In this document: positions 3,029-27,600 of the stretch, piece after piece
How the letters are laid out: the number at the start of each line of letters is the position of its first letter
How positions within the stretch are numbered: the stretch's first letter is position 1
From: Bugula neritina
Lineage: Eukaryota; Animalia; Bryozoa
Direction: 5' to 3'
NCBI GenBank assembly: GCA_964035545.1
Contig: OZ037767.1
Location: 26,428,628-26,492,627 of the forward strand
Length of the DNA stretch: 64,000 nt
Notes under the pieces: model-generated
What the model was told of the DNA's origin: nothing
The model's database searches: none
Seen by the model: the letters and a program-made list of their open reading frames with translations, nothing else
Program-made: the position numbers and the translations under genes

Positions 3029-3985
3029 TCAACTGTCATCAGGTTGAACCTGATTGGAGCATCTATCAATTCTTAAAATACTCTTTATTTTGCTGACATA
3101 TTTTGGATGGAAATAAGCAAATAGCATTACATTTGCTATGCCATACAAATTGACACAAAACGTAGCAACAATCTCTAATATGAAAGTGAAAGTCGAGAAG
3201 TTCGTAAACTGCAGCACCATTAAAGTTGTCAGCAAAAAGTTTGATATTTGATGCATCACGTATATCCATATGATGAATTTACTTGCAGTCAACAATGTTT
3301 TATCGCTTTGTCTACTAATCGGCTTCTTTATCATAATTCTCAACTTTCTCCAGACTTTCACCAGAAGAATTATGATCACCAGTGACTCGGCACCAACTGG
3401 TATGGTTAATAAAGCAGATGCTAATATCTGGGGCTTGCCAAAAGCATACATGACTTTAAGCTGTGACCAACAAAGCTTTGGCAAGTAAACCACACAAATA
3501 AGACAGGAGTATAAGAATCCTAAAGCTAGTGCAAATCCAAAACATCTCTTGATCTTCCTTACAATGTAGTTTGTTTTGTAGTTGTGTGGTCTGCAAACAG
3601 CAACGTATCTTTCTATGCTTGCTATAAATAACACGGAATACCTGGAAATCACAGCAAATCCTATCAAGGCTTGAGCTGTGAAAAATAGTGAGTATGCCAC
3701 AATAGAAGAAAGTTTAAAAATGGCGACACGAAGTTTGCAGCTGAAATACAAAAAATTAATGATGCAGATTATGGTATCAGTAATAGTTATGTTTACTACA
3801 ATCCAGAAATACTTTGTATTTTTAAATTCCTTTATCTGACGCAGTACAAGCAGATGTAGGATATTCAAAACGAAAGATGCCAAGTTCATAGCATTGTTAG
3901 TCTGGTTGAACGGCTGATAACACGTCTCTGTATCATTCTGAACGCATGGTAAGACTTCAAAGTTAGTAGAGCCATAGTTTCCCAT
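3029..3985 (-). CDS. Intronless rhodopsin-family GPCR, tandem paralogue, copy B
   Basis: 318-aa ORF colinear with copy A (ASIERYVAVCRP). Flanking DNA is also duplicated (841-905 vs 2913-2975), giving a ~2.07 kb period. Confidence 0.9.
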   Translation of the reverse strand: MGNYGSTNFEVLPCVQNDTETCYQPFNQTNNAMNLASFVLNILHLLVLRQIKEFKNTKYFWIVVNITITDTIICIINFLYFSCKLRVAIFKLSSIVAYSLFFTAQALIGFAVISRYSVLFIASIERYVAVCRPHNYKTNYIVRKIKRCFGFALALGFLYSCLICVVYLPKLCWSQLKVMYAFGKPQILASALLTIPVGAESLVIIILLVKVWRKLRIMIKKPISRQSDKTLLTASKFIIWIYVMHQISNFLLTTLMVLQFTNFSTFTFILEIVATFCVNLYGIANVMLFAYFHPKYVSKIKSILRIDRCSNQVQPDDS

Positions 3986-7204: not shown

Positions 7205-10200
7205 ATGGTCAGAGAATCACGGTATATTAAAGTTGGACAAATTCCTATCGGGATTTCAGATGACAAAGTCGCTGATCACTTTAGAAAGTATGTTCTATAA
7301 ATTCCTATTAATTTTAGCAAAAATTAGAATCTAGAATATTACTCAGATTAGTTCTTTTAAGCTACTAGGGTTAGAACAGTTGAAATGTCTCTGCTCATAT
7401 TCGTAGTGAAATTTGTCCCCAAATACAATGGCGATATTCATTGCCATCCAACACAGCATGACATTTTGCCAGCGTTATACGTGGTTTTGTACGGCTAAAC
7501 ATAACTTTGCAATTCCCCAGCAATTATTCTAGCTACCATAATATAGTTGAAATGCTCAATAAGTTCTAAAAGCAAATGAGCTAAGTGTAAGTTAATGATT
7601 GATTACTTTAACTAGTTATCAAACTGCCTGCTAGTAGCTGGTAGCCATGTTGCGCATATCAAATTTCACCTTCAACTAGGATATAAGTGAACTAGGTTGT
7701 TTTTCTGAACGCGTAACCACAATGCTCTTTTAATTCCCTGATTAATTTAGCTTGGAGTGATTATTAGAAGGGCTGTGGCCCTGTCGAACTGTTAGTAATA
7801 TAAATGATAGCGTTTTCTGATAATTTTGCGGTTAGAGGCAAACCGCACTATATTCTATATGCTTGGTTAGCTTGCAGTATTTGCGGTTTATCATTATCAC
7901 AAGAATAATTCAATGGCATTCACCTATTGTCATAGCAATAAAGCCCCCCAGAAGCTACGGTGTGGCTCCACAAAGTATCATTATTGTGAAAGCAAGTTGG
8001 AATAAGAGCCCTTATCTGCGTTTAAGTTTCTAGTCTATTGAATACGCTCCACCATGTTGAATGAATTCACTTAGAACTAGAAATTCTTGAAAGGATCATT
8101 TCATTAAAATCTATTTAGGGATTAGTTTGTTTTGCAGACGAACTATTGAGCTATAGAAAACCTGTGCAGGTTTTGAGATCGGAGCTCTTTGTTTAAAACC
8201 AGACATTATTCTATTGATTGAGCTCACGCAGCCTAATATCAGCAGATAATAAGTTTGTACGCCTTTTGTGTTATTCAGTAAAGCTTGGCTACACACAATG
8301 CAGTACTAACCAACTGATGGAAATCAATACATCATGTGATGTTGAATCAAAATGCTGGGTATGGGCTTATAATAGCTCAATATGCCTAGCCGCCTCCTGT
8401 TATCGCTATTGCTTGCCAGTTTTCTATTAGCTAGTTATCAGCTATCCTACGCAGTAACAGGCTTGTACAGCCGTGTACAGCTGCACACTAATCAATACAG
8501 AATGCAAGGCAAATATCATAGTGGCTGAAAATCGTAGGATTGAAAGGCAACCCTTATGTGTCATGTTGCTGATGTTGAGCAGCAAGTTGATGTATGGTGG
8601 TTTGTTTTAGATATGGTAAAGTGCATTCTGTAAGACTTGAGGACCAGGCAGACTGCCTTGAAGCTGTAGTTGCCTTCACCGACATCAAGGCAGCTAGTCA
8701 AGCATACAACGAGGATCAGCTACTTAATGGTGCTTGCCCCTTATCTATTGCCTTCTGTGATGCTACCGGTACAACTCAGAGTGAAGCCCGATGTCCAACA
8801 CATTCAGTTGAGAAGTTGGATGGTGGTTGCACACCCACCCATACTGATGGAACTTTAAATGGACCTTTGTCTGTTGTGGGAGATAAGGAGGGGTAAGAGA
8901 CAGATGAGTGGTGATGATCTAGTTAATACAAACACTATAACTCTTGTTTCCACTTTTTCGGCAGTGCACATGCAATGCAGCAGCAGCGTACTAAATTCAT
9001 GTCTAGCAAAGCTGATAATATTGACTTGCTGTCAGTCCCAGTAGACGCTCAGCTAGGATAAAAATGGTAACATATAAACCCAAGGATTACATTATTTCCC
9101 GACCCATTCAGTAATTTCACATGCTCTACTTTCAGCCCTCTCTTCCTCAAACTCCTAGTGCTATAAGAATGGCATTAAAATACTGATTTTATGAATCATC
9201 GCCTACACATTAACTATGTGTATAATGTAGTATTAATATTGTACTAGCTTAGTATTAGTTATAGCTGCAACCATCCACCTGGCTCTTTCATAACCAACTG
9301 CTACAAATCTTGAACTCTTGCTTTCACACTCTTTTCCTCCTCCCTTCAAACGGATTAGTAAAGCTACCATCTTATGGATTATATCTATCCTATGGATTAC
9401 ATCTATCCTATGGATTATACATTTGCCAACCCCTTTGGATTATATATATTTTCTTTGGATTATATGCCATTTCTAACATCCAAGTTGGATTACAAAATTT
9501 CTGTCGGATTATTGTTACTGGCAAAATGGTAAGTCACTACATTATTTTCATAATATTTCATGTGAATTCTCAATATTTCAATTATTGATAGTGCTATGGC
9601 TGCTTTAACCACTGCAATGATTACTTGATTTTCTTATTATTGCAGCTTGGATATCATAAACTGCCCAGACATCTTCCATCTCCAACTTGGATTATTTCTC
9701 CTGGAACTGTGCATTGGATTAATGTAATGCCGGAGTGCATCTACCCAACTGGGTTATCTGGGAATGGATTAGAAAGAGGCCAACCGAGGATATTGTATTA
9801 TAAACTGCTCGTACTAACTGACGTGGCACAGCCTTCTCATTTCAATTACAACTGCCGGCCCTCCATTATTTAATCTACTAGCTGCAATAACACTTCGCTT
9901 TCCAAGATAATGCAGTAACTAGAGCGTCGCTTGTTGACCCAAAGCCTTTGGAACGGTGCCAACTATCTATGTAAATAGGATGGCTTAGCCTATGTGGTAT
10001 ATAGCGTGTTGGAGCTCTCGCACTTGCGCTCCTAAATTGTTTAGAAGCCATGGATTTAAGGCTGACATGTTTGACTTGATGTACGTCTGAATTCTGCCAC
10101 TGTTGATCATGGCTGTAACGTTCGAGAGCTGTTGTTGATGTGCTGGTGATGGTTGTACTACTGGGACCACCATTAACTATATTATTAGTGAGTTAGTCTA

Positions 10201-12623
10201 TGGCCACATAACCCAGCAACGTACTAGACTGGCGCTGGGTACTAATTGCTACTGGAGTATGATTACTAAACTTTCTGAACTAGTCTTGTGAAATTCCAGT
10301 TTAGTTGTAGTGCAGTTCATGATAATTCCATGTACCCAGTTCTCGCTATAAAAGCTTAGTACGGCATCATCACGGAATTCCTCGATTCACACTGATGTTA
10401 TCAGTTGATCAGAACTGACTGTAAATCAAGTTTCTCAAATTCTGGCAAAATCTTTAATGCTCAATTTGTGATGAACTATATGTAAACTTGAAGCTATCTT
10501 TCCATGATTATATTATATTGTGTTATTTATAAAACAAATAAAACATCCTCTTGTAGGCGATAAAGAATGTTTTTGTTGTTCAAGCCTTGTTTCTAAATGC
10601 AGTTATTTTAAAGCTGTGTAGGTGTTCCAGGTCTATTTTATCAGGGTTACCATAATCTGGTTGTAATAATAAGCTAGATATAATAGTGACCATCGTAGTA
10701 GTGGTGCCACTGTAAATGGTAAATGTATTGGAAGTATTGGCAACAGTAATGTTGATAGTGGTAAGAGTATTGATGAAACTAGTAATTTTGTTCCAGTAAA
10801 AGTAATGATTATAATGGTAATAGACTGTAACTATGGTAATGATAGTGCTAATAGTGGTGGTGGTAGTAGTAATAATGATAGTAGTAGTAATAGTAGTAGT
10901 CGCAGTAGCAGTATAATAGTAGTAGTAGTAGTAGCAGTATAGTAGTTAACTCACTCACTCATAGTAGTAGTAGTAATAATAATAGTGGTGGTAGTAGTAG
11001 CAGCAGTATAGTAGTAGTAGCAGTAGTAGTAGTAACAACAGTAGTAGTAGGGATAGTAGCGATTGGCAGGGTTGGAAATGTATTACTACCACTGTTTAAT
11101 TATGTTTATATCTAGCATAGCAATATTTATTTAATTAGCAGTTTGCTGTTCATCCCCATATATACTATACTCGGGTTACTTATTTCTTACTAATGGCAAG
11201 ATCAGTTTGCCTAGCTCCTACAAGGCTTGCCTTTGTGCTGGTAATCTGTAATACTGTCGGACTGCATGCAAGTCAACCTATAATGTTCATTTCGTTCTAT
11301 ATTATATTGATTATAAATGAATAATACTCCAGGGAATTTCAAATTTCAAGCTGTTCATGTATTATAGTCATTTAATAGTCTACTGGGCTGTTAACAAAAA
11401 ACTACTGGTAGCCAGTTGCCTGCTTAGCTGTGTAGGCTATTTTTAAAAGCTGACAAATTGGAATAAATATAATGCATACACTTTTCTTACTCAATTGGCT
11501 GAATACTGAAAGTTGGATGATTAGAAGAATCCACAGTGATGTTTTTTATTTTGTATTTAAGGCATCGCCAGTTCAATCGATCCGATATATTTGATTATGA
11601 ACTTGATTTTATAATGGTGCAATTTTAAGTTATTTTTGGTTAGTGAGATAGTGTGGCATGTTAGATGAGATTCATTATAGCTCTCGACTTAATTTAGTCC
11701 CTTTCTTACAGAGCCACCACTTCTCCAGAAAGGAATAAAGAAAAAAGAAAATCCAAGTCACCTTCTAGAAATAAGGGACATTCTAAATCTCCTCCTAATA
11801 GTAGATCGAGATCTCGGTCTAACTCAACTGGCAGCTCTAAAAGGTTAGTTGAGTTTGAGTATATGCACAGCTGGTGTATCATCTACTACTTCATTTCTAG
11901 TACCACCAGATTGTGCTGTACAGCATAGCAGATTGTATATTATTTTCCATTGTAGTGATAATAACTTGAAGTGCTTTAGTTTTTACCATCAATTTGCTAT
12001 TCTATAATACTTATCATTTCCATCTCTAAGTAGGCTGGTACAACCTTTGTATTTAGTACTTGCTAAGCAGATGTTCGAAACCATTCCTGGCACATGCCCA
12101 AGTCTACCAAAGCATATCATTTATAATCAACTAACTGAATGTTGCAACAACAATCAATAATGGGTTGGTTACCATACTCTGTATGTATACCAGCCTACAG
12201 CCAGCCAGAGCTTTGAACAAGGTTGTGTATAGTTGGTAGAGTACTTAGCCTGGGCTAAATAGTCATTATAAGTCTAGTTGGGAGAGAGGAAAATATTTCA
12301 TGTTTTCAGCTTATAGGCTGAGATCAAGTGTCAAGTATCACATCCTGATGGTAGTGTTATAGTATGACACTCTCAAAATAGAATTCAGTAGTGTTTGCAG
12401 GTGCTTCCCGCTGTGAATGTAATGTTTATAACCTAGGATGTTATGCTGTTAGTACTGCCACTACTACTAGTACCACTAGTAATATTACTACTACAGTTAA
12501 TACTAATAATATATTGTTAGTACTAATTATGTACTATTAGTAGCGCTATCGCTACTACTACTACCACTGCTACTACCTCTACTACCACCACCACCACTAC
12601 TACTACCACTACTACTGCTACTA

Positions 12624-12666
<43 letters not shown>

Positions 12667-15600
12667 CACTACTACTACCACTACTACTGCTACTAATACC
12701 ACAACTTGTCTGCTGTGTCTACTGACTATGATGTATTACATTGTAGCAGCCGGACAAGAAAATCCGACACTACCTCTAAATCAAGCACTGCCGGTGACAC
12801 TATCAGAGTTAATCTTGGCGTGAGAATAACACATTTACCCTCACGCTCTTCAGGTAATACCTGTCAACTCTACTGTTCTTTGACAGTCATAGCTTATTAT
12901 CTTTGTTATAATATATGATCACATTGTGTGTGACTTCGTGCACCTAGTGCAAGTTATGTAATATAGTTAGTTACAGGTGTGTTGCAGTAATTTTAATTGT
13001 AGTGCTTGAGTATGAATTTAAATAATTTGTAGTTTCAAAGCATATATTTTTCTAACTGGTATTTGGTTTTCCCAATCCACTTCAAATCAAGAGATATGGA
13101 TCTATTGCAGCAAATCACATAACTTTAGCGCTGGCAATATCCTGTTATACAATGCTATCACTCTGTGTTTAGGTTCTTTCGTCCCAAGAATGAGTAGAAT
13201 TAAGCTCTACATTCATTTCAGAAACTAAGAACTCATTTCATAATGGTAGCTATTATGCACAAATGTTTCTAATGTCATTTTTATGGGAGACAGTAATAAC
13301 AAAAACCAGACTATGGTTTTGCCATTGCTCTTTAGCATTTAAATTAGAATCAAAACTTCGTTCAAACAAGCAACCCTTATAAATAAAGTATAGTATAGGG
13401 GCGGTGAACATTTACCATTTACGCACACGCTACCAACCATGCGGCAGGACCTCAAGGAACAGCAACTCCGAAATGTGCAGTACATGCTCTGTAAAAGAGG
13501 ACAACTTCTAATTACTCAGCATAGTGTATTACGGCATCTAGTAGTATGACAACTCCAAATATAACTCTTCGTTTTTTGTTATTAGATACAAGTCTGCGAG
13601 ATGGCTTGTTTCATGAGTATAAGAAGCATGGTAAGGTAACTGGCGTAGTGATAGAAGGCAAAGAAGCATCACGATCTGCTATTGTCAGTTTTAAAAAGTA
13701 TGTTTGTTTACCCTACCCATCCTTATCTACCCAACCTCTGCTGGTTATGTTTTCATTCTGCATATAAAATTGATTTGAAATAATTTGCTTAGCATAATTT
13801 TTAATTGGTAGTTTCAAAAAAATTCTGGTACTCTTTTAAATTTTAGTTGGAGTGTTCTGCCTTGGCATGCAAGCTTCACTATAGTGGTTACAATAAATTC
13901 AAAATGGTTTTTATAGAAATTTCGCTGTCATATTTTTTGTGTACCTTGATATGTCATGAATCTGTTTGTATTACTTGACTCACTCAACAGACCTTTCAGC
14001 ATATGTAATATTCTAGAATGTTCTCTTCACTGATTTTGGTATTGTAGACCTGAAGAAGCAGAGAAAGCTCTGGAAGCTTCTCGAGAAAAAAGCTTCTTTG
14101 GTTCTCAGATAGTTGTTGAAGCTCACGCAGGATTCGTGAGTGAGTCAGCCGAGGAAGAGAGCGACGAGCCAGAGTTTGACGAGTATCATGTCAAGGCCAC
14201 CAGGACGCTGTTTTGCGGCAACCTGGAGCCGCACACTAGCAGCAGTACGCTTCGTGAAACATTTAAGAAGTTCGGAGAGATTGTGGTATGTGCTTATTAA
14301 TCTGAGTCGGTGGTGGCTATACACTGTGTTACCAATGCTTTGAATTATGTGAATGTATGCTGGTCAGGATGAATTTGTGGTTGCTTGCGGTTTCATTTGA
14401 TGCAACTGTTTCCAAACATCAGATGAAAAATCTATGCACATGATGCTAAGCTGGGAAACGTAGAGATAGATATGTCTATGTGGTTTCGTTTTACAAAAGG
14501 CTATTCGATAAAATTTCTTGCTGGTGAATAAAATCTGAAATGACCTTGGAATGTGTTAGCTGCAGGTCAAGGACTAATGCATCTGTTGAATGATTCATTA
14601 CAGGATATAGAGATTAAGAAGCAAGGCGCTGCCTCATCCTACGCCTTTGTCCAGTTCTCTGATATCAAATCCGTCGTGCAGGCACTGAAGAAAAAAGATG
14701 GAACTCATTTGGGTATCAACAAAATCAAACTTGGCTTCGGGAAAAGCATGCCTACAAACTGCGTATGGATAGACGAGCTGCCAGACAACATAACTGAGAG
14801 CCTTATTAGGCGTGCGTTAGGAAGGTAAACAGTTAATTTAAGCTTCAATAAGTAGTGCAAGTCTACACCTGCATTAAATTCAAATTCATAGAATGAGTGT
14901 ATAATAGTTGTTTCTCCTTTATTTCTAATGACTATTTCATATGTAACCCTACATCATGCCAAACAGGATGCTGTGTATAGCTGTGAGATTTCATATGTAG
15001 CCCTAATGGAGTTTTCGCTCCCTGTGATATTTCATGAGTTGCTTGACTTTATAGACACGGTCTCATAACTGACGTAGTATTGGACAAGGAGGCTATGAGA
15101 GCACTTGTATCATTCCAGGCTACTGACCAAGCTGTAGCCGCTTTAAGTGATCTCAAACAGCGACCTCTAATGATGACCAAGAAGCTCATGGTGAGCCCTT
15201 CACACGTCAATGTTTTATTATATATGGTAAAGCTAGAAGTTAGAGCGGCTTGGTGCATCACTTTTTTTTCAGCAATTGAATTTAATTTTAGAGCAAATAG
15301 TTAAATAAATAAATTACAAATAAAAAAATGTAAAACTGCCACAAAGCATCTTTACAACACACTTCCGAGATGTAAAAACTGTTTTTGCTAAAGTAAATTG
15401 TATGTTATAACATTTTTTTATATAGCTCTAATATTGAACTTGTACGAACTATAGGTGGACTTTGCTAGCTGGGACTTTCAAGATAAATACAGAGAAAAAT
15501 TAGGGCTGCCAGCACCACCCACCCTACCTCCTCGAAGAGTTGGGGACAATGACAGATACCCTGCAAGGGGAGGGGCCATGGAGGTTAATGACAGGGGACC

Positions 15601-21600: not shown

Positions 21601-24600
21601 CATTGGAGCAGAAAAAGGAACATGAACGCCAAGAAGAGCTGAAGCGGCAGCAAGAGATGCGTCAAAAGGAAATTGAACGACAAAAAGAAATTGAACGTCA
21701 AAAGGAAATTGAGCGTCAAAAAGAAATTGAACGACAAAAGGAAATTGAACGTCAAAAAGAGTTGAACCGTCAAAGAGAATTGGAAAAGCAAAGAGAGCAG
21801 GAAAGGCAAAAAAGATTAGAAATTGAGAAAGAGACTGAGCGTAAGAAGCAGAAGGCAGCTGCTCATCAACGTAGTCTAGATAATGAAAGGCACTCTGACA
21901 CTAAGGATGAGGACAGCTCGGAATCTGACATAGAAACTAAACCGTCCAAATATAAAAATAAAGTCAAATCCAAAGCTGCAACCTCTAACAAAAGTAGCAA
22001 GAAAAGTGGTAAAGAAACTGTACCAGTGAATAAAGCATCTAAAAAGTCTGCAAAACAAGAAAAGAGTTCACCTAAGAAGCAGCCAAAAAGGCGTAAAGGT
22101 GAGATAACTTATGTACTTTTTTTTTTAATTCAAAATTACATATATTAACACTACCTGCTGCCATTTTCTTTTTTGGACACTGCACAGTTTTCTTGCAAGT
22201 AGTTTCATTATGAAAATCTAATTATTTTCCAGCAATGATCATCAAGAACCGCTTGTAAAATTAATTCCAAGTTGAACTTTTTATGTGTATTTTTTAGTAA
22301 GTAGAGTAGTGGAATCTGCCACCTCTTCAGGTGAGGATGAGGTTGAAGATAAGACTCACACGAATGTTCCTTCTGAAGCCGAACATTCTCCGACTCTGAT
22401 AGAAGATGTCGTGGAGGAAGTAGTTGACCAGACAGACGAAGTTGTTGACAATCGAGAGCGAGAGAAGACTGAGGAAGAAAAAGCTAACTGGATGCTGGAG
22501 TATGCCCCATTTTTTGAGTCCATGTATGACAAGGTGAAGCGAAAGAGAACGGCTGCTAAGAAAGCTGCCGAAAAAACACAGAGAGCTAAAAAAGCAGTGG
22601 AAAAGGCAAAAGCAAGAAAGTGAGGAAAATCGCAAGCATATGTGTGGCCTACTGTATAAATATGTAGTAAAATGAAGTACATGTTTGTGCAGTGTAACTT
22701 AAGTTTAGAAGAACTTGGTAATACTGGTCTAATAATAATCATTCTTGTCTTGAGGATATAAGGCAAAGGTCAGTTGAGTATAATGGTGATTCTGTTGTAG
22801 CAAAGAAACAGATTCTGATGATAGCGATAGTGACTCTGAAGAGGTTGAGGAGTCGCCATTGTCTTCTCCTGTGAGAAACAAGGCTAAACAATCTAGTGGA
22901 AAGAAAAGTGTGCTGGTCACATCGGAGAGTGAAGACATGTCTCCTCAGAGATTTATATCTAAAGAGAGGAAGAGTGGCTCGGCCCACAAAACCTCGCACA
23001 AACAGAAGAAACTAGAGGCTATAAAATTATCCAACAAGCCTCAAAAGCAGTCAACTGTCAAAAAGAAGGTAAGCTTCCCCCCCCCCCCCCGGTGGTTTTT
23101 AGAGAATAGTTCTCTGCTTTTTCATGAATTTGTTTTGATGCCCAATGTCAAATTTTACCATTACAAGGTTGAGGGTCGCTTGTTTTAGGCCAACAAATAT
23201 TAACATTCACTGTGAAAATATATTCTATAATATTGAATGGCAGAGGTACTATGCAGGGCTATGTTTTATATTGTACATTCATGGGATATGATGATTCTGT
23301 TATATTATAATTCTGTTTTCCATCAAATGAATGTTTATGTCAGCATAGGTTTGGTGAAACAAAAAGCTTTTTGAAAACTATTCAAGTGACTACGAATTAT
23401 TTTCAAGTTTTTCATAAAAGACTAATTATTATTATTGTTGATGGTTTTGTTGATGGTTACGGCTATACACTTACTGTTTGACCTTGTTGCAGAAGCCGAG
23501 CACGCCATCGAAACACTCGGCTCTCTCGGCAGCTACAACTCAGCTGTCGGACTCGGAAAGCGAGAGCGAGGTGGACACCGTGAAGAGCAACGAGGTCAAG
23601 AAGAGGGTTTTGAATAACGTGTGGAGGAGAAACCCCAACGAGGCGAATAAGAAGAAAGCAACTCCTGTATCTAAAGGGAAGAAGCAGCAGAACCCTGCTA
23701 AACGAAAGGTAGGGAATGCCATGGTTCTCACTGCTTGCAAGAGTAGCAGAGTCGGGTGGTTACTGAGCCAGCCTCAAAGCTCTAATGTCAGCTAAACATA
23801 GCATAGCAAGGTTGCTAAACTGCATTCTGTTAAATGCAACATTATTAGAAATTCCAATTGTCCATCGTATTATCAACTTGTCTACTTTCTTGTTTGTGTC
23901 TCTTGATTAATTTGATGCTGACCTTATTATGCAGTTTGATGAGGCAATGTAACTCACAGTAATGGTATGTTATCCAACTAAATGTGCAATTTTATCTGAC
24001 CAATGCTTATTTTGCTGGAGTTTTATAATATATAGATAGCTAATAGATGAAATAAGGTACACAATGCAAAATAAAGGTTAGTTAGCTACTTCAGCATTCA
24101 AGTTTCTTCATAAGCTTCTGTCAACTGTGCCTATTACTTTCATTTACTTTTATGTAAGTTAGGAAACTTTTGTATCCTAGTCTGATTGTATTTTGTTGGA
24201 TTATGGATCCTAAACAGTTTGAAATAGACTGAGGTCTATTGTCTTGTTTGCAGACAAGTGCAAAGGCTTCTGCTCCACCCCCTACTACATCTGAGCAGAG
24301 CTCTTCAGATGAGAGTGATAGCGAGACTGAAACAGAACCCGTATCTCCTGTTGCTCCAGCATCTCCACCAGCACCGGCATCTCCACCTGCACCAGCGTCT
24401 CCACCTGCACCAGCGTCTCCACCTGCACCAGCATCTCCACCAGCACCAGCATCTCCACCAACACCAGCATCTCCGCCAGTTCCAGCTGCTAGTAAAAAGA
24501 GAAAGCAGTCTGCACCAACTCCAAGCAAAGTAGCTCCTAAGCGCCAGGTTTGTATCTTCTGTGTTGTATTTGGCAGGGTTGGGGTCAATTACATGTAAAT

Positions 24601-27600
24601 GTAATTAATTACAATTACAATTACATGAAGATTTGTCAATTACAATTACAATTATAATTACAGTTGAAAATAAATGTAATTAATTACAATTACAATTACA
24701 TGGCAATGTAATTAATTACAATTACAATTACTTTTGTTCTCGCAAGGAATAAATAGAAGTTACTTCTAGGGTCCAACTACCAGCGGCAATGGTGAACCTC
24801 TTTTGTTTTCTACAGTGATACTATTATGTCATTCCATACCAAATCAACCAACTTTCAAGGAGTCCCACATCTTTGTGTCTCAGATTTTGCTCATATTTAC
24901 ACTAAATGGACCTACACATGTTCAGATTACCACTCGTGAATATTTCTGGCCTGACACAAAAACATTTTGAGAAATTACTACTTTGGTGAACAAAGGTTGG
25001 AAAATTTGTGATTTATACTTTTAGACCAATTTATATGTAATTTAAAATTTGATTAGGCGAGTATTTGAAATTTTTCAAAATTTACAAAGATTTGTTCATA
25101 TTCAATGATTTTGCATATATGCACACAAAGTATTCTGTAGTATGTGTTGCTACTAGTGCAAATTGTTGGGTATTATCAAATCACAGCAAATTTAAGGCTC
25201 AGTCTGGAAAATTGATTGAGATATAGACGTTTATAGATTAGTCTAAAAATAGAAATCACAAATTTTCCTCAAAATGTTTCTCAACTTTTGTCCACAAAAG
25301 TAGTCAGTTCTCAAAAAAAATTTGTGTCAGGTCAGAAATACTGAAGAAGAGTACTTGAGGTATGTGTAGGTCTATTTGGTGTAAACATTAACAAAATCTG
25401 AGACGCAAATAGACGCGGGCAATTCGGTGAGCTGGCATGGAATGACCCTACTATATAGACCTAACTATCTGAACTTGTTATTTAACAGTAGGCATTGTAG
25501 AAAAAGGAGTTTTTTAAGATTTAAAAGTTTGAAGTAATTGACATGTAATTATAAAGTAATTGTAAAAATCAATTACATTAGATATGTAATTAATTACAAT
25601 TACAATTACAATTACATTTTTAAACCTCAATTACAAATTACATTCAATTACTTGAAAAAATGTAATTAATTACAGCCAATTACAATTACAAATTACAATT
25701 ACCCCAACCCTGGTATTTGGACAGTTGTTGAAGGTTATAGTGCAATAGCAGGTAATAACATAGTTGAGATATTATTATAATATAATGTATTATGTTTTAG
25801 AAGAGGCAGTCTAGCGTGGCTGAGGATACAGCCGAGCAAACCGCTAACTCTGCACCGGCTTCTAAAACTTCACAACCTGTCAGACAAATAAAACCTACAA
25901 CTAAATTAGTCAAACCTAAGTCGGCCTCTAGTAAGGCCGTGGCTGCTGCTCGTAGCAAGCAATTAAAGGCAGCAAATAATCGAAGTCAGAGCAGTGGCAG
26001 CAGCAGCAGTAGCTCATCAAGCTCATCTAGCAGCAGCTCTGGTTCAAGCAGCAGCAGTAGCAGCGACAGCGAGTCTGGGAGTAGCCGCAGTGCTAGTCCG
26101 GAGGCATCACCTACAAAGGTAAGTTATGTGGTGGATGTGTGATGAATTCCCTGCTCAGCCAGCTGTGAATGAAACGCTCTCATTATGGACCTAACATCAC
26201 TATCACTTATTATTATCCTGTATGTTTTAGGCTGAGCCACCCAAACAGACTGGAAAAGCTGCTATATCCTCCAAATCATCAACAGTTGAGGTAGTGTATG
26301 CCATATGTATGTGCATTTATTTACCTAGCATATTTACTTATAATGCATTTGTTGCGTACTATTCAAAACATGAATATATAAGTAGAAGCTAATTAGAGGA
26401 TAAAAGTATGAAGTAGTTTTTGCTAAAATTAACATCCGTTCTGATAGAGTTTCAGTTTTAGGGAGAAACAAGTGTATAGTTGAAACAGTTATTATGTAAT
26501 TAAATTAAGAGTTCAACTAAAGGTTTTGCTGGCGAACCTGTATCCTGTTGCTGGTTTCTTGTGGGGCTGTTGCTCTGCTTTTTGTTGAAAGGCTTATTCA
26601 AGTTTGGTTGGCGGATACATTTTAAGAATTGCAGATGATTTCGTAACCCTATTGGTGCCTCATATTTACCAGCTGAATATGAATATGGCTGAAAGTGAAG
26701 GCCAAGGAAAGAAAGCCAAGTCTAGCAGTGAGAGAGAGACTGCGACTAGCGACACGAGGAAAGAGACTTCATACATGGAGGTTGAGAGCACGACTGTGGG
26801 CGTCTTGTCTACTATGAATGACGACGAAGATTCTCTCCTTCCGGGACTAGTCATCGAGGAGTCGGTACCCGAGCATCTGACTGAAGAGAACTCAGCTGCC
26901 GTTGCGTCTCTCAGATCTTACACGGCTGAGGAGGTGTGTGCTGCATACAATACTGCTTACAATACTGCATGCAATACTGCTTACAATACTGCTTACAATA
27001 CTGCATACAATACTGCTTGCAATACTGCTTACAATACTGCTTGCAATACTGCTTACAATACTGCTTACAATACTGCATGCAATGCTGCTTACAATACTGC
27101 TTGCGATACTGCTTGCAATACTGCTTACAGTACTGCATGCAATGCTGCTTACAATACTGCTTACAGTACTGCTTGCGATACTGCTTGCAATACTGCTTAC
27201 AGTACTGCTTACAATGCTGTAATGTGATGTGTGAGATGTGTAAAAATGTTCCGGAAAATGAACACGGTGAAGTGTGGGGCACGTTTATTGTATAATAAAA
27301 AATAATTGCCCACTATGGGAGGGGGTGGGGGGGTCTAAAGCCTTGCCTAACATCGTAATGTGAATCCCCCTGTTGTGTTACCAGAACACAGCTGTATGAT
27401 GAGCTGACAAATCTGTGCTAAAATATTGTATCATATAATGTAAGTTATGCGGAAACAGCTTTTGACTAACTCATTAAGTGTTGATTCTGCTGCAAGAGGT
27501 GACAAGTCTTCTATATTATTATATGCTGTTGTAGACCATGAGTGACTATATAACGCCTAATCATGCAGCATCTTCTCCACCTGAGAACAAAATGGAAATT

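Follow-up and report, generated by a model that had tools for sequence, protein, structure and literature searches.

A conserved sense-strand GGATTA array with embedded splice-like signals in a spen intron of Bugula neritina and eight further taxa

Poison exons, which serve autoregulation through unproductive splicing, occur in genes of RNA-binding proteins such as the SR and hnRNP genes and Tra2-beta, whose exon 2 carries several Tra2 enhancers. In the USSE of the U11-48K and U11/U12-65K genes, tandem repeats of a U12-type 5' splice site recruit U11 and activate an upstream non-productive 3' splice site. Homotypic arrays of protein-binding sites set splicing by dose in dsx, where Tra/Tra2 read 13-nt repeats, and in intron VI of C. 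elegans xol-1, where FOX-1 reads GCAUG/GCACG clusters. At the DNA level, Bicoid, Otx and Pitx enhancers are homotypic clusters in which about 6-12 K50 homeodomain sites are packed into a few hundred bp. The established core of such sites is TAATCC, and K50 factors favour a Y ahead of it and a C behind it.

SPEN, a repressor of deep conservation, acts in Notch and nuclear-receptor signalling as well as in X inactivation, yet neither its RNA specificity nor the control of its own expression is well defined. In mouse, the Spen protein binds the mRNA that encodes it and keeps its own output down; Spen mRNA rises when the protein is lost (PMC7282817). Here we present a GGATTA array found in a spen intron of the bryozoan Bugula neritina, within a 64-kb stretch of genomic DNA (the window), together with its occurrence in related taxa, its embedded splice-like signals and the readings that may account for it.

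Like the poison exons, the array is a conserved non-coding module in the gene of an RNA-binding protein, with putative cryptic splice sites that would bring in stops and a short motif repeated within or beside a candidate cryptic exon. Unlike them, it conserves motif count and layout rather than an alignable ultraconserved block and is split into two sub-clusters by a putative internal intron. With the USSE it shares deep conservation and the repetition, on the sense strand, of a short RNA signal within an RNA-processing-factor gene's intron, as well as, in the proposed reading, a use in feedback; the USSE, however, consists of two splice-site copies read by an snRNP, whereas the bryozoan array has about 12 copies, for which no resemblance to an snRNA target was identified. 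The dsx and xol-1 arrays are similar in their many same-sense copies with variable spacers, in a copy number that is kept as sites turn over between species and, as proposed for the bryozoan array, in a splice choice as output; there the binders are known and the effects shown, whereas the bryozoan array lies in a different gene and phylum and has a different motif. The K50 clusters share the TAATCC core, the number of sites and their extent, whereas the bryozoan array has a single orientation, non-preferred flanks and positions locked to those of splice sites.

The spen intron and its array

The features of the locus are as follows (all on the + strand; positions are those of the window).

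7205 (ATG) to 7287, +: first coding exon of spen
8611..8892, +: RRM1b exon of spen (C-terminal half of RRM1), donor GG/GTAAGA
8893..11711, +: intron of spen that holds the module, 2819 nt, read by eye
9084..9089, +: single GGATTA upstream of the clusters; in the other taxa 0-3 such lone copies precede cluster A
9320..9351, +: tract rich in pyrimidines that abuts cluster A on its 5' side and may belong to the 3' splice site of a putative exon A
9352..9511, +: cluster A, 8 copies of (U)GGAUUA with 18-30-nt spacing
9528..9534, +: internal 5' splice site consensus G/GTAAGT; the exon would end at 9528
9529..9645, +: putative internal intron, 117 nt, motif-free, ending in ttcttattattgcag
9646..9771, +: cluster B, 3 GGATTA (9689, 9716, 9766) plus GGATAT variants
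9818..9827, +: CTGACGTGGC box, overlapping TACTAAC (9812-9818) and followed by CAG (9829-9831)
11712..11843, +: next constitutive spen exon, RS-rich, 132 nt, phase-preserving, translation checked by hand

The first-pass annotation had placed the array in SPEN, next to an RRM1 exon and between phase-2 flanks; this was right, as exon and intron coordinates, Pfam and the Watersipora orthologue agree. Pfam matches comprise RRM_1 and, further along the gene, a partial SPOC, and the Watersipora orthologue carries the NCBI name msx2-interacting protein-like. The open reading frame of the RRM1b exon has 17 homologues, this W. subatra protein included, and the exon is single-copy in the genome of Bugula neritina itself. 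The acceptor of the RS exon (AG 11710-11711), read by eye, is the partner of the RRM1b donor, and both junctions of the intron fall after codon position 2. Left unspliced, the RRM1b frame reads GGG TAA, an immediate stop at the second codon.

Twelve exact sense copies of GGATTA start at 9084, 9352, 9376, 9394, 9412, 9437, 9457, 9487, 9506, 9689, 9716 and 9766 and span 9084-9771, with none antisense within 9050-9875. At the background rate of the other 22 sites of the window, 0.12 copies are expected on one strand in 690 nt (Poisson P(>=12) = 1.6e-20), in agreement with the earlier estimate of well under one by chance. The enrichment is local: over the full window the motif shows no excess over shuffled sequence (34 matches vs 32.7). 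Not all copies are independent: positions 9369-9419 form a young tandem repeat (18-nt unit, 2.8 copies, 90% identity) and positions 9433-9474 another (20-nt unit, 2.1 copies). Outside these two repeats the spacers are unrelated. The 18-nt repeat has one unit more than in the near-identical JGI contig L010, and in a relative about 4% diverged from the window every shared motif is intact.

The young repeat, with its copy number varying between close relatives, is what a neutral reading would build on, namely that the segment is a decaying minisatellite or a transposon fragment with chance GGATTA. We regard this as extremely improbable and have excluded it: only 9369-9419 and 9433-9474 qualify as head-to-tail units, and a search of the 216-Mb genome returned the segment itself as its sole match, which also shows that it is not a multicopy repeat. 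Furthermore, the hexamer is exact in 115 copies over nine taxa whose introns cannot be aligned and whose spacers are unrelated, while the other triple-motif matches in the genome are exact satellites with fixed units. The single other non-satellite GGATTA triple in the genome, L002, has three copies beside a FEN1-like exon and is too small to interpret.

A coding reading of the array was rejected, as the motif spacings are not multiples of 3. As to a miRNA sponge, we know of no conserved miRNA seed that fits the motif. Rfam gave no match at gathering score within the window.

Conservation and strand of the motif

Nine taxa, bryozoan or presumed bryozoan, were compared (the window plus eight). 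The lack of a cluster in orthologous introns had been set beforehand as the refutation test, and the cluster is present in all eight further taxa, Watersipora subatra among them, where it likewise occupies the spen intron that directly follows the RRM1b exon. The layout of the array is kept in nine taxa, in an intron that has otherwise diverged beyond alignment (column identity 46%), and its strand, copy number and embedded splice-site consensus sequences are conserved. An exon identity of 57-84% among the contigs excludes their origin from the same species. Two further related taxa, presumed to be bryozoans, came from a scan of metagenomes, which yielded none from another phylum, and a HMMER search of the exon peptide against 1.84 billion representatives returned only the same bryozoan fragments and one unrelated multi-RRM protein. 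Exons were queried singly, and the protein databases contained no match derived from a transcript.

Each taxon has 11-17 sense copies, in total 115 sense vs 1 antisense over the nine taxa and 84:0 in a seven-taxon subset. In a five-taxon subset GGATTA is the top 6-mer (59 copies vs 1.6 expected, with 11-12 in each taxon and none of the reverse complement), TGGATTA occurs 45 times vs 0.7 expected, and the variant GGATAT is enriched as well (14 vs 1.9). The consensus is U-GGAUUA-(U/A): position -1 is U in 77% of sites (A 6, C 12, G 1 and T 65 over 84 sites), positions +6 and +7 are U/A, the flanks contain little G, and no two copies are closer than 12 nt. In the window nine copies precede the internal donor, 8 of which belong to cluster A, and three follow the acceptor, while L014 has 4+8; the steady total of 11-17 with a shifting split between clusters fits selection on valency.

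Beyond the motif, CT-rich 5-mers are enriched in five taxa, and tracts like that at 9320-9351 were seen by eye in other taxa. CT-rich words aside, the CTGACGTGGC box is the sole shared 8-10-mer outside the motif copies; exact copies of GACGTGGC occur in 6 taxa, those of CTGACGTGGC in 4. The box could be a branch-point or 3' splice-site-like signal, or equally a CRE/UPRE-like DNA site.

The strand of the motif bears directly on a DNA-level reading, in which about 12 TAATCC sites, read antisense, would serve a K50 paired-like factor (Otx, Pitx, Gsc), perhaps with a CRE/UPRE-like TGACGTGGC box, as a homotypic enhancer driving or tuning spen transcription from within the intron. The TAATCC core with 11-17 sites per taxon within a few hundred bp is in its favour, as is the second conserved DNA-like box nearby; homotypic clustering, a conserved count with turnover and the 12-bp minimum spacing suit a transcription-factor cluster equally well. 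The first-pass annotation had held that the strand bias favours an RNA element. The ratio of 115:1 does count against an enhancer, as an orientation-independent enhancer is expected to show mixed orientations and the palindromic or head-to-head pairs common for paired-like homeodomains, which the array lacks. Taken alone, however, the bias is insufficient against an enhancer, because small tandem duplications visibly make copies that keep their orientation: a bias of this origin can persist without selection, a single orientation can be inherited in this way, and the 18-nt repeat shows such duplication. Other observations speak against an enhancer: most sites are flanked as A-TAATCC-A, the enriched GGATAT variant has no TAAT core, and an enhancer accounts neither for the fixed distances that separate the motifs from a conserved 5' splice site and a conserved acceptor nor for the motif-free internal intron. 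The enhancer, the main rival reading, appears unlikely.

Splice-like signals within the array

The splice-like signals reported earlier were all located in the window, namely a GT at 9067, G/GTAAGT at 9528/9529, AG ends at 9135 and 9645, TACTAAC at 9812-9818 and the CAG at 9829-9831. Three of them are conserved across taxa: the 9529 donor, the 9645 acceptor and the TACTAAC/CAG region, which proves to be the CTGACGTGGC box. The 9067 donor and the 9135 acceptor have no conserved counterpart. An exon module acting at the RNA level is favoured over chance because the array recurs in orthologous introns, is single-copy and retains these three signals.

As in poison exons, the putative cryptic exon would end at a conserved 5' splice site consensus: G/GTRAGT occurs in 7 of 8 taxa, always between the sub-clusters (with two copies in L023), where 0.10-0.19 are expected per 1.7-kb region. 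Taxon L025 has only a weakened donor, GTGGGT. The donor lies 23-30 nt past cluster A in 5 of 7 taxa, and in the window 23 nt past the start of the last cluster-A motif. The interval from donor to acceptor (91-292 nt) is motif-free in all 7 taxa. The acceptor before cluster B, a pyrimidine tract plus AG, is good in 7 taxa and precedes the first cluster-B motif by 40-51 nt in 5 of 7 (44 nt in the window). The acceptor of exon A is not conserved in position, though all taxa have a pyrimidine tract, and the end of exon B shows no conserved donor or poly(A) signal across taxa. Inclusion would interrupt the frame, as in poison exons, by the TAA at codon 2 and by stops within 9136-9528, a stretch with stops in all three frames.

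A mirtron or hairpin reading of the internal intron was rejected (fold z-scores of -2.3, -0.4, 0.1 and 0.7 in four taxa). By predicted accessibility the motifs look more paired than composition-matched 6-mers, a difference that is gone against GG-starting controls (P = 0.78), so that accessibility carries no information here.

A conserved donor without a conserved upstream acceptor would also suit an alternative first exon or a separate non-coding transcript: an internal promoter would produce a first exon with cluster A that ends at the conserved donor, giving either an RRM1-less spen isoform spliced to the RS exon or an independent lncRNA, and the array would belong to a 5' leader or to that lncRNA. 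The NCBI model of W. subatra indeed has a 206-aa product whose start ATG lies 5 nt ahead of the internal donor. In the window, however, the corresponding ATG/GT joined to the RS exon yields a 9-codon reading frame, and three other taxa have no ATG. An RRM1-less protein from this site is not a conserved outcome, because the ATG at the internal donor is in phase only in Watersipora. The conserved acceptor and cluster B past the donor are left unexplained as well, and we consider this origin quite improbable.

Another NCBI product of W. subatra, of 119 aa, is just what an intronic termination switch predicts. Here the array and GGATTAAAAAC, which contains ATTAAA and lies 40-64 nt before the strong donor, would control premature cleavage/polyadenylation or intron retention, with a stable RRM1-only protein of about 120 aa as the result. 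All taxa have the read-through stop one codon past the exon, and GGATTAAAAAC is common to 5 taxa as the penultimate A motif. The immediate stop, however, follows automatically from a GTAAG donor at such a codon phase, the window copy reads GGATTACAAAAT and lacks ATTAAA, no conserved AATAAA lies past cluster B, and the NCBI model may be an artefact of a locus split into three genes. The termination switch is hardly likely.

A possible splicing switch and its candidate binders

Because nine lineages keep its layout, the array is probably an RNA-level switch on spen output. Judging from the compared sequences, we place moderate confidence in the reading that it is a multivalent protein-binding array controlling a non-productive exon or an alternative donor in spen. 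About 12 single-stranded U-GGAUUA-(U/A) sites, all borne by the transcribed strand, would together offer a multivalent landing platform to a single sequence-specific RNA-binding protein. The sites would span two short pseudo-exonic stretches, of which A ends at the strong internal 5' splice site and that of cluster B starts past a short internal intron with a good acceptor. Use of the internal donor, be it in a cassette exon or in an extension of RRM1b, would bring stops into the spen frame, in the extension through the TAA directly past the normal donor. Occupancy of the array may then decide how much of the spen mRNA is productive and how much is not, and the non-productive form could be subject to NMD decay, be truncated to RRM1 only or be retained in the nucleus. 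Action of the sites as RNA, use of the cryptic splice sites and the direction of regulation are presumed here.

Since the genome holds essentially no second array of this kind and the present one lies inside the gene of an RNA-binding protein, the simplest guess, though a doubtful one, is that SPEN regulates itself through it. In its full form, which we find speculative and on balance unlikely, the RRMs of bryozoan SPEN would bind UGGAUUA multivalently on their own nascent pre-mRNA, and about a dozen filled sites would lead to the embedded non-productive exon. The self-repression of mouse Spen, the one indirect support for binding by SPEN, is alike in that the protein binds the transcript of its own gene and reduces the RNA made from it, and differs in concerning a mammal and in that no defined cis-element, motif array or splicing mechanism was described (PMC7282817). 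Published preferences of SPEN RRM2-4 are for U-rich spacers and structured RNA, not UGGAUUA. A literature search for a SPEN poison exon found nothing; for GGAUUA and longer forms of it, the literature gave siRNA sequences, the MS2 hairpin and an Hrp48 site, but no RNA-binding protein documented to prefer UGGAUUA.

An hnRNP A/B or DAZAP1/Hrp48-type protein is another candidate. Sites of Hrp48, a Drosophila hnRNP A/B protein and DAZAP1 orthologue, are UAGGAUUAAG in the msl-2 3' UTR and UAGGUUAAG at the P-element pseudo-5' splice site (bioRxiv 10.1101/2024.03.26.586676). They share the GGAUUA core, and the P-element copy acts beside a 5' splice site. UAGGAUUAAG, however, needs UA before GG, whereas position -1 of the bryozoan array is U in 77% and A in 7%; the UA 5' and AG 3' of GGAUUA typical of Hrp48/DAZAP1-type sites do not characterise the array.

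The array is a gene-specific cis-element, essentially unique in the genome, with a precise 7-nt motif at fixed distances to cryptic splice sites, and its presence shows that conservation of motif count without alignment can reveal regulatory modules in non-model phyla. We offer dose-sensitive feedback on spen as a hypothesis for its role. If SPEN were indeed the sensor, the array would provide the first defined high-affinity linear RNA motif for SPEN and the first cis-element for its self-control, and would open a way to search for its equivalents in other animals.

The spen locus and its intronic GGATTA array

The + strand of the window carries a spen/SHARP/MINT-like gene, for which the following exon model was read by eye; exons were analysed one at a time.

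7205, + strand: start codon
7205-7287, + strand: first coding exon, N-terminal half of RRM1
8611-8892, + strand: RRM1b exon, C-terminal half of RRM1, with the donor GG/GTAAGA
8893-11711, + strand: intron with the GGATTA array
11712-11843, + strand: RS-rich exon, followed by more RRM exons

In Pfam, RRM_1 scored over the cut-off in the exon at 14553, and a partial SPOC was found in a single exon near 31.6 kb (21.8 bits, under the 25-bit cut-off). For the RRM1b exon, the closest homologue with a name is the Watersipora subatra protein 'msx2-interacting protein-like'; the NCBI taxonomy assigns this species to the Bryozoa, Cheilostomatida. The long coding exons contain in-frame (PAPAS)n repeats at ~24.3-24.5 kb (24239-24598) and an (AYNT)n-like in-frame run at ~26.9-27.2 kb (26900-27230). 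Upstream of spen, on the - strand, lie two tandem intronless 318-aa ORFs (958-1914 and 3029-3985), clear paralogues with a GPCR-like seven-helix appearance, in place of which other bryozoan contigs have an ankyrin-repeat gene. An (AGT/GGT)n microsatellite at 10827-11085 is the reverse complement of an (ACT/ACC)n microsatellite at 12441-12702, with arms of up to 86 nt and 79-89% complementarity. The two lie on either side of the 132-nt, frame-preserving RS-rich exon, and their pairing in the pre-mRNA could loop out this exon and lead to skipping or back-splicing.

The GGATTA cluster reported in the first-pass annotation is real: 12 exact copies occur on the sense strand at 9084-9771, where ~0.12 are expected (P ~1.6e-20), 8 of them within 9352-9511 (cluster A), and none on the antisense strand. 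The excess is local, since the whole window is without enrichment (34 copies versus 32.7 in shuffles). Cluster A is partly a young tandem repeat (18-nt unit, 2.8 copies, 9369-9419), followed by a second one (20-nt unit, 2.1 copies, 9433-9474), so that not all copies are independent events; the spacers outside these two repeats are unrelated to each other. The 826-nt array segment has no second match anywhere in the 216-Mb genome, which sets aside a multicopy repeat, and no Rfam family reached its gathering score in the window. Among 100 of 130 matches listed, GGATTA triples within 45 nt elsewhere in the genome are exact fixed-unit satellites, and the sole other non-satellite triple is on a different chromosome. 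Transposon and satellite families are both excluded as the source. This three-copy TGGATTA site (G000:C2:21516295-21516346 of the same genome) is followed after ~150 nt by an exon similar by eye to the FEN1 C-terminus, and is too small for interpretation.

Comparison across bryozoan taxa

With the RRM1b exon ORF as query, 17 homologous exon ORFs were obtained, and their contigs were fetched, together with one metagenome scan. Orthologous introns of eight further taxa came from the contigs L010/L011 (~4% diverged from the window), L012/L018 (Watersipora subatra), L013, L014/L015, L016/L017, L019, L020, L023/L024 and L025. Contigs other than those of Watersipora were assigned to the Bryozoa on the strength of 57-84% exon identity with the window. 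The comparison of spen orthologues, proposed in the first-pass annotation across phyla and covering this bryozoan set, recovered the array in every further taxon, with 11-17 sense copies in the first ~1.5 kb past the equivalent RRM1b donor.

Sense GGATTA copies past the RRM1b donor
Window: 12
L012 (Watersipora subatra): 11
L013: 12
L014: 12
L016: 12
L019: 14
L020 (contig ends inside the array): 11
L023: 17
L025: 14

Over these nine clearly diverged taxa (window included, L010 left out) the sum is 115 sense versus 1 antisense. When k-mers were counted without bias in five taxa, GGATTA ranked first among the 6-mers (59 observed versus 1.6 expected, reverse complement 0), with TGGATTA (45 versus 0.7), GGATAT (14 versus 1.9) and CT-rich words also enriched. 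MAFFT gave 46% column identity for these introns, which makes them essentially unalignable; conservation thus concerns the motif itself, its strand, its copy number and its layout, and not the intervening sequence. In the 4%-diverged contig every motif shared with the window is intact, and the number of 18-nt units is off by one. Neutral sequence is hardly credible as an explanation, with the hexamer exact, at ~12 copies, on one strand and at the same intron position in nine such lineages; since a neutral minisatellite or repeat fragment cannot keep this pattern, the array is a predicted binding platform for some factor, as RNA or as DNA. The division of the copies by an internal intron ranges from 9+3 in the window, where cluster A holds 8 of the 9, to 4+8 in L014, and the narrow total together with the varying split suggests that selection acts on valency and not on individual sites.

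Splice-type layout and proposed mode of action

The logo of 84 sites consists of U at -1 (77%), GGAUUA, U/A at +6 and +7, and G-poor flanks, with a minimum spacing of 12 nt and a usual spacing of 15-26 nt; as the spacings do not keep to a period of three, a coding role was rejected. Predicted accessibility of the motifs did not differ from that of GG-starting control 6-mers (P = 0.78). The copies form two sub-clusters with splice-type signals between them.

9528/9529, + strand: putative internal donor, G/GTRAGT consensus
9529-9645, + strand: putative internal intron, from donor to pyrimidine tract and AG
From 9689, + strand: cluster B, GGATTA copies
9818-9827, + strand: GACGTGGC/CTGACGTGGC box

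G/GTRAGT, expected by chance 0.10-0.19 times per 1.7-kb region, is present in 7/8 taxa with coverage, always between the clusters (twice in L023; GTGGGT at the homologous place in L025), and in 5/7 taxa lies 23-30 nt past the point where the last motif of cluster A begins. The internal intron behind it measures 91-292 nt, is free of motifs in every taxon and closes with a pyrimidine tract and AG, with cluster B beginning 40-51 nt past this AG in 5/7 taxa. A hairpin reading of this intron was rejected by folding analysis in four taxa. All taxa possess a pyrimidine-rich tract ahead of cluster A, and no positionally conserved acceptor was found there among the taxa compared. Outside the motif copies, and CT-rich words aside, the sole common 8-10-mer reads GACGTGGC in six taxa or CTGACGTGGC in four, ~50-450 nt 3' of cluster B, single-copy and exact in the window, L012, L013, L014, L023 and L025; it resembles either a DNA site of the CRE/UPRE type or a CTGAC branch point near an AG. 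Among the splice signals named in the first-pass annotation, the donor at 9529, the AG at 9645 and the TACTAAC/CAG area, whose TACTAAC the box overlaps ahead of the CAG, coincide with conserved features, whereas the GT at 9067 and the AG at 9135 are not conserved across the taxa.

We lean towards an array that would act at the RNA level as a splicing-control module, and the putative regulatory exon module of the first-pass annotation is the best-supported reading, with an RRM1-less protein as a merely conjectural product. The RNA reading is favored by the fixed distances that separate the motifs from a conserved acceptor and 5' splice site, an internal intron devoid of motifs, the strand ratio of 115:1, flanks that are poor in G on the sense strand, and the location in an RNA-binding-protein gene directly 3' of a donor where read-through would meet a stop one codon on. 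TAATCC, the reverse complement of GGATTA, is the core of K50 homeodomain sites, and an enhancer acting as DNA could have inherited its single orientation from tandem duplication of new copies, with CTGACGTGGC resembling a CRE/UPRE-type site; however, A-TAATCC-A is not known to be among the K50-preferred flanks and the enriched GGATAT variant is without TAAT, and we regard such an enhancer as unlikely.

At the Watersipora subatra locus (L012:10001-22427, OY755166), NCBI annotates three separate genes, with products of 119, 206 and 2454 aa. The 119-aa model terminates at the in-frame TAA that the RRM1b donor supplies when unspliced, and the 206-aa model opens with an ATG located 5 nt ahead of the internal donor (~L012:12994), an in-phase ATG that is not conserved across taxa. 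Transcripts entering the intron, and splicing from the internal donor, would be compatible with this split, which may equally be a modelling artefact. Two further readings also assume action as RNA: a first exon or lncRNA from an internal promoter, which is distinctly unlikely, and, less probable again, an intronic termination switch yielding an RRM1-only product.

Candidate binders and placement of the element

The sole documented protein site with a GGAUUA core found in the literature is the Drosophila Hrp48 site UAGGAUUAAG, which requires UA before GG, whereas U precedes GG in the bryozoan array. The literature search found no paper tying SPEN RRMs to a UGGAUUA-type motif; published SPEN RNA work describes U-rich spacers, structured RNA and recruitment via SR proteins. 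SPEN itself would be a rather doubtful binder, considered here because mouse Spen binds the Spen mRNA and acts as a repressor of its own output (PMC7282817) and a genome-unique array in spen suits an autoregulatory sensor. The array element is real and conserved and, as far as the literature searched shows, has no earlier description. The putative spen module would belong to a known class, the motif-array-controlled unproductive splicing in RNA-binding-protein genes.
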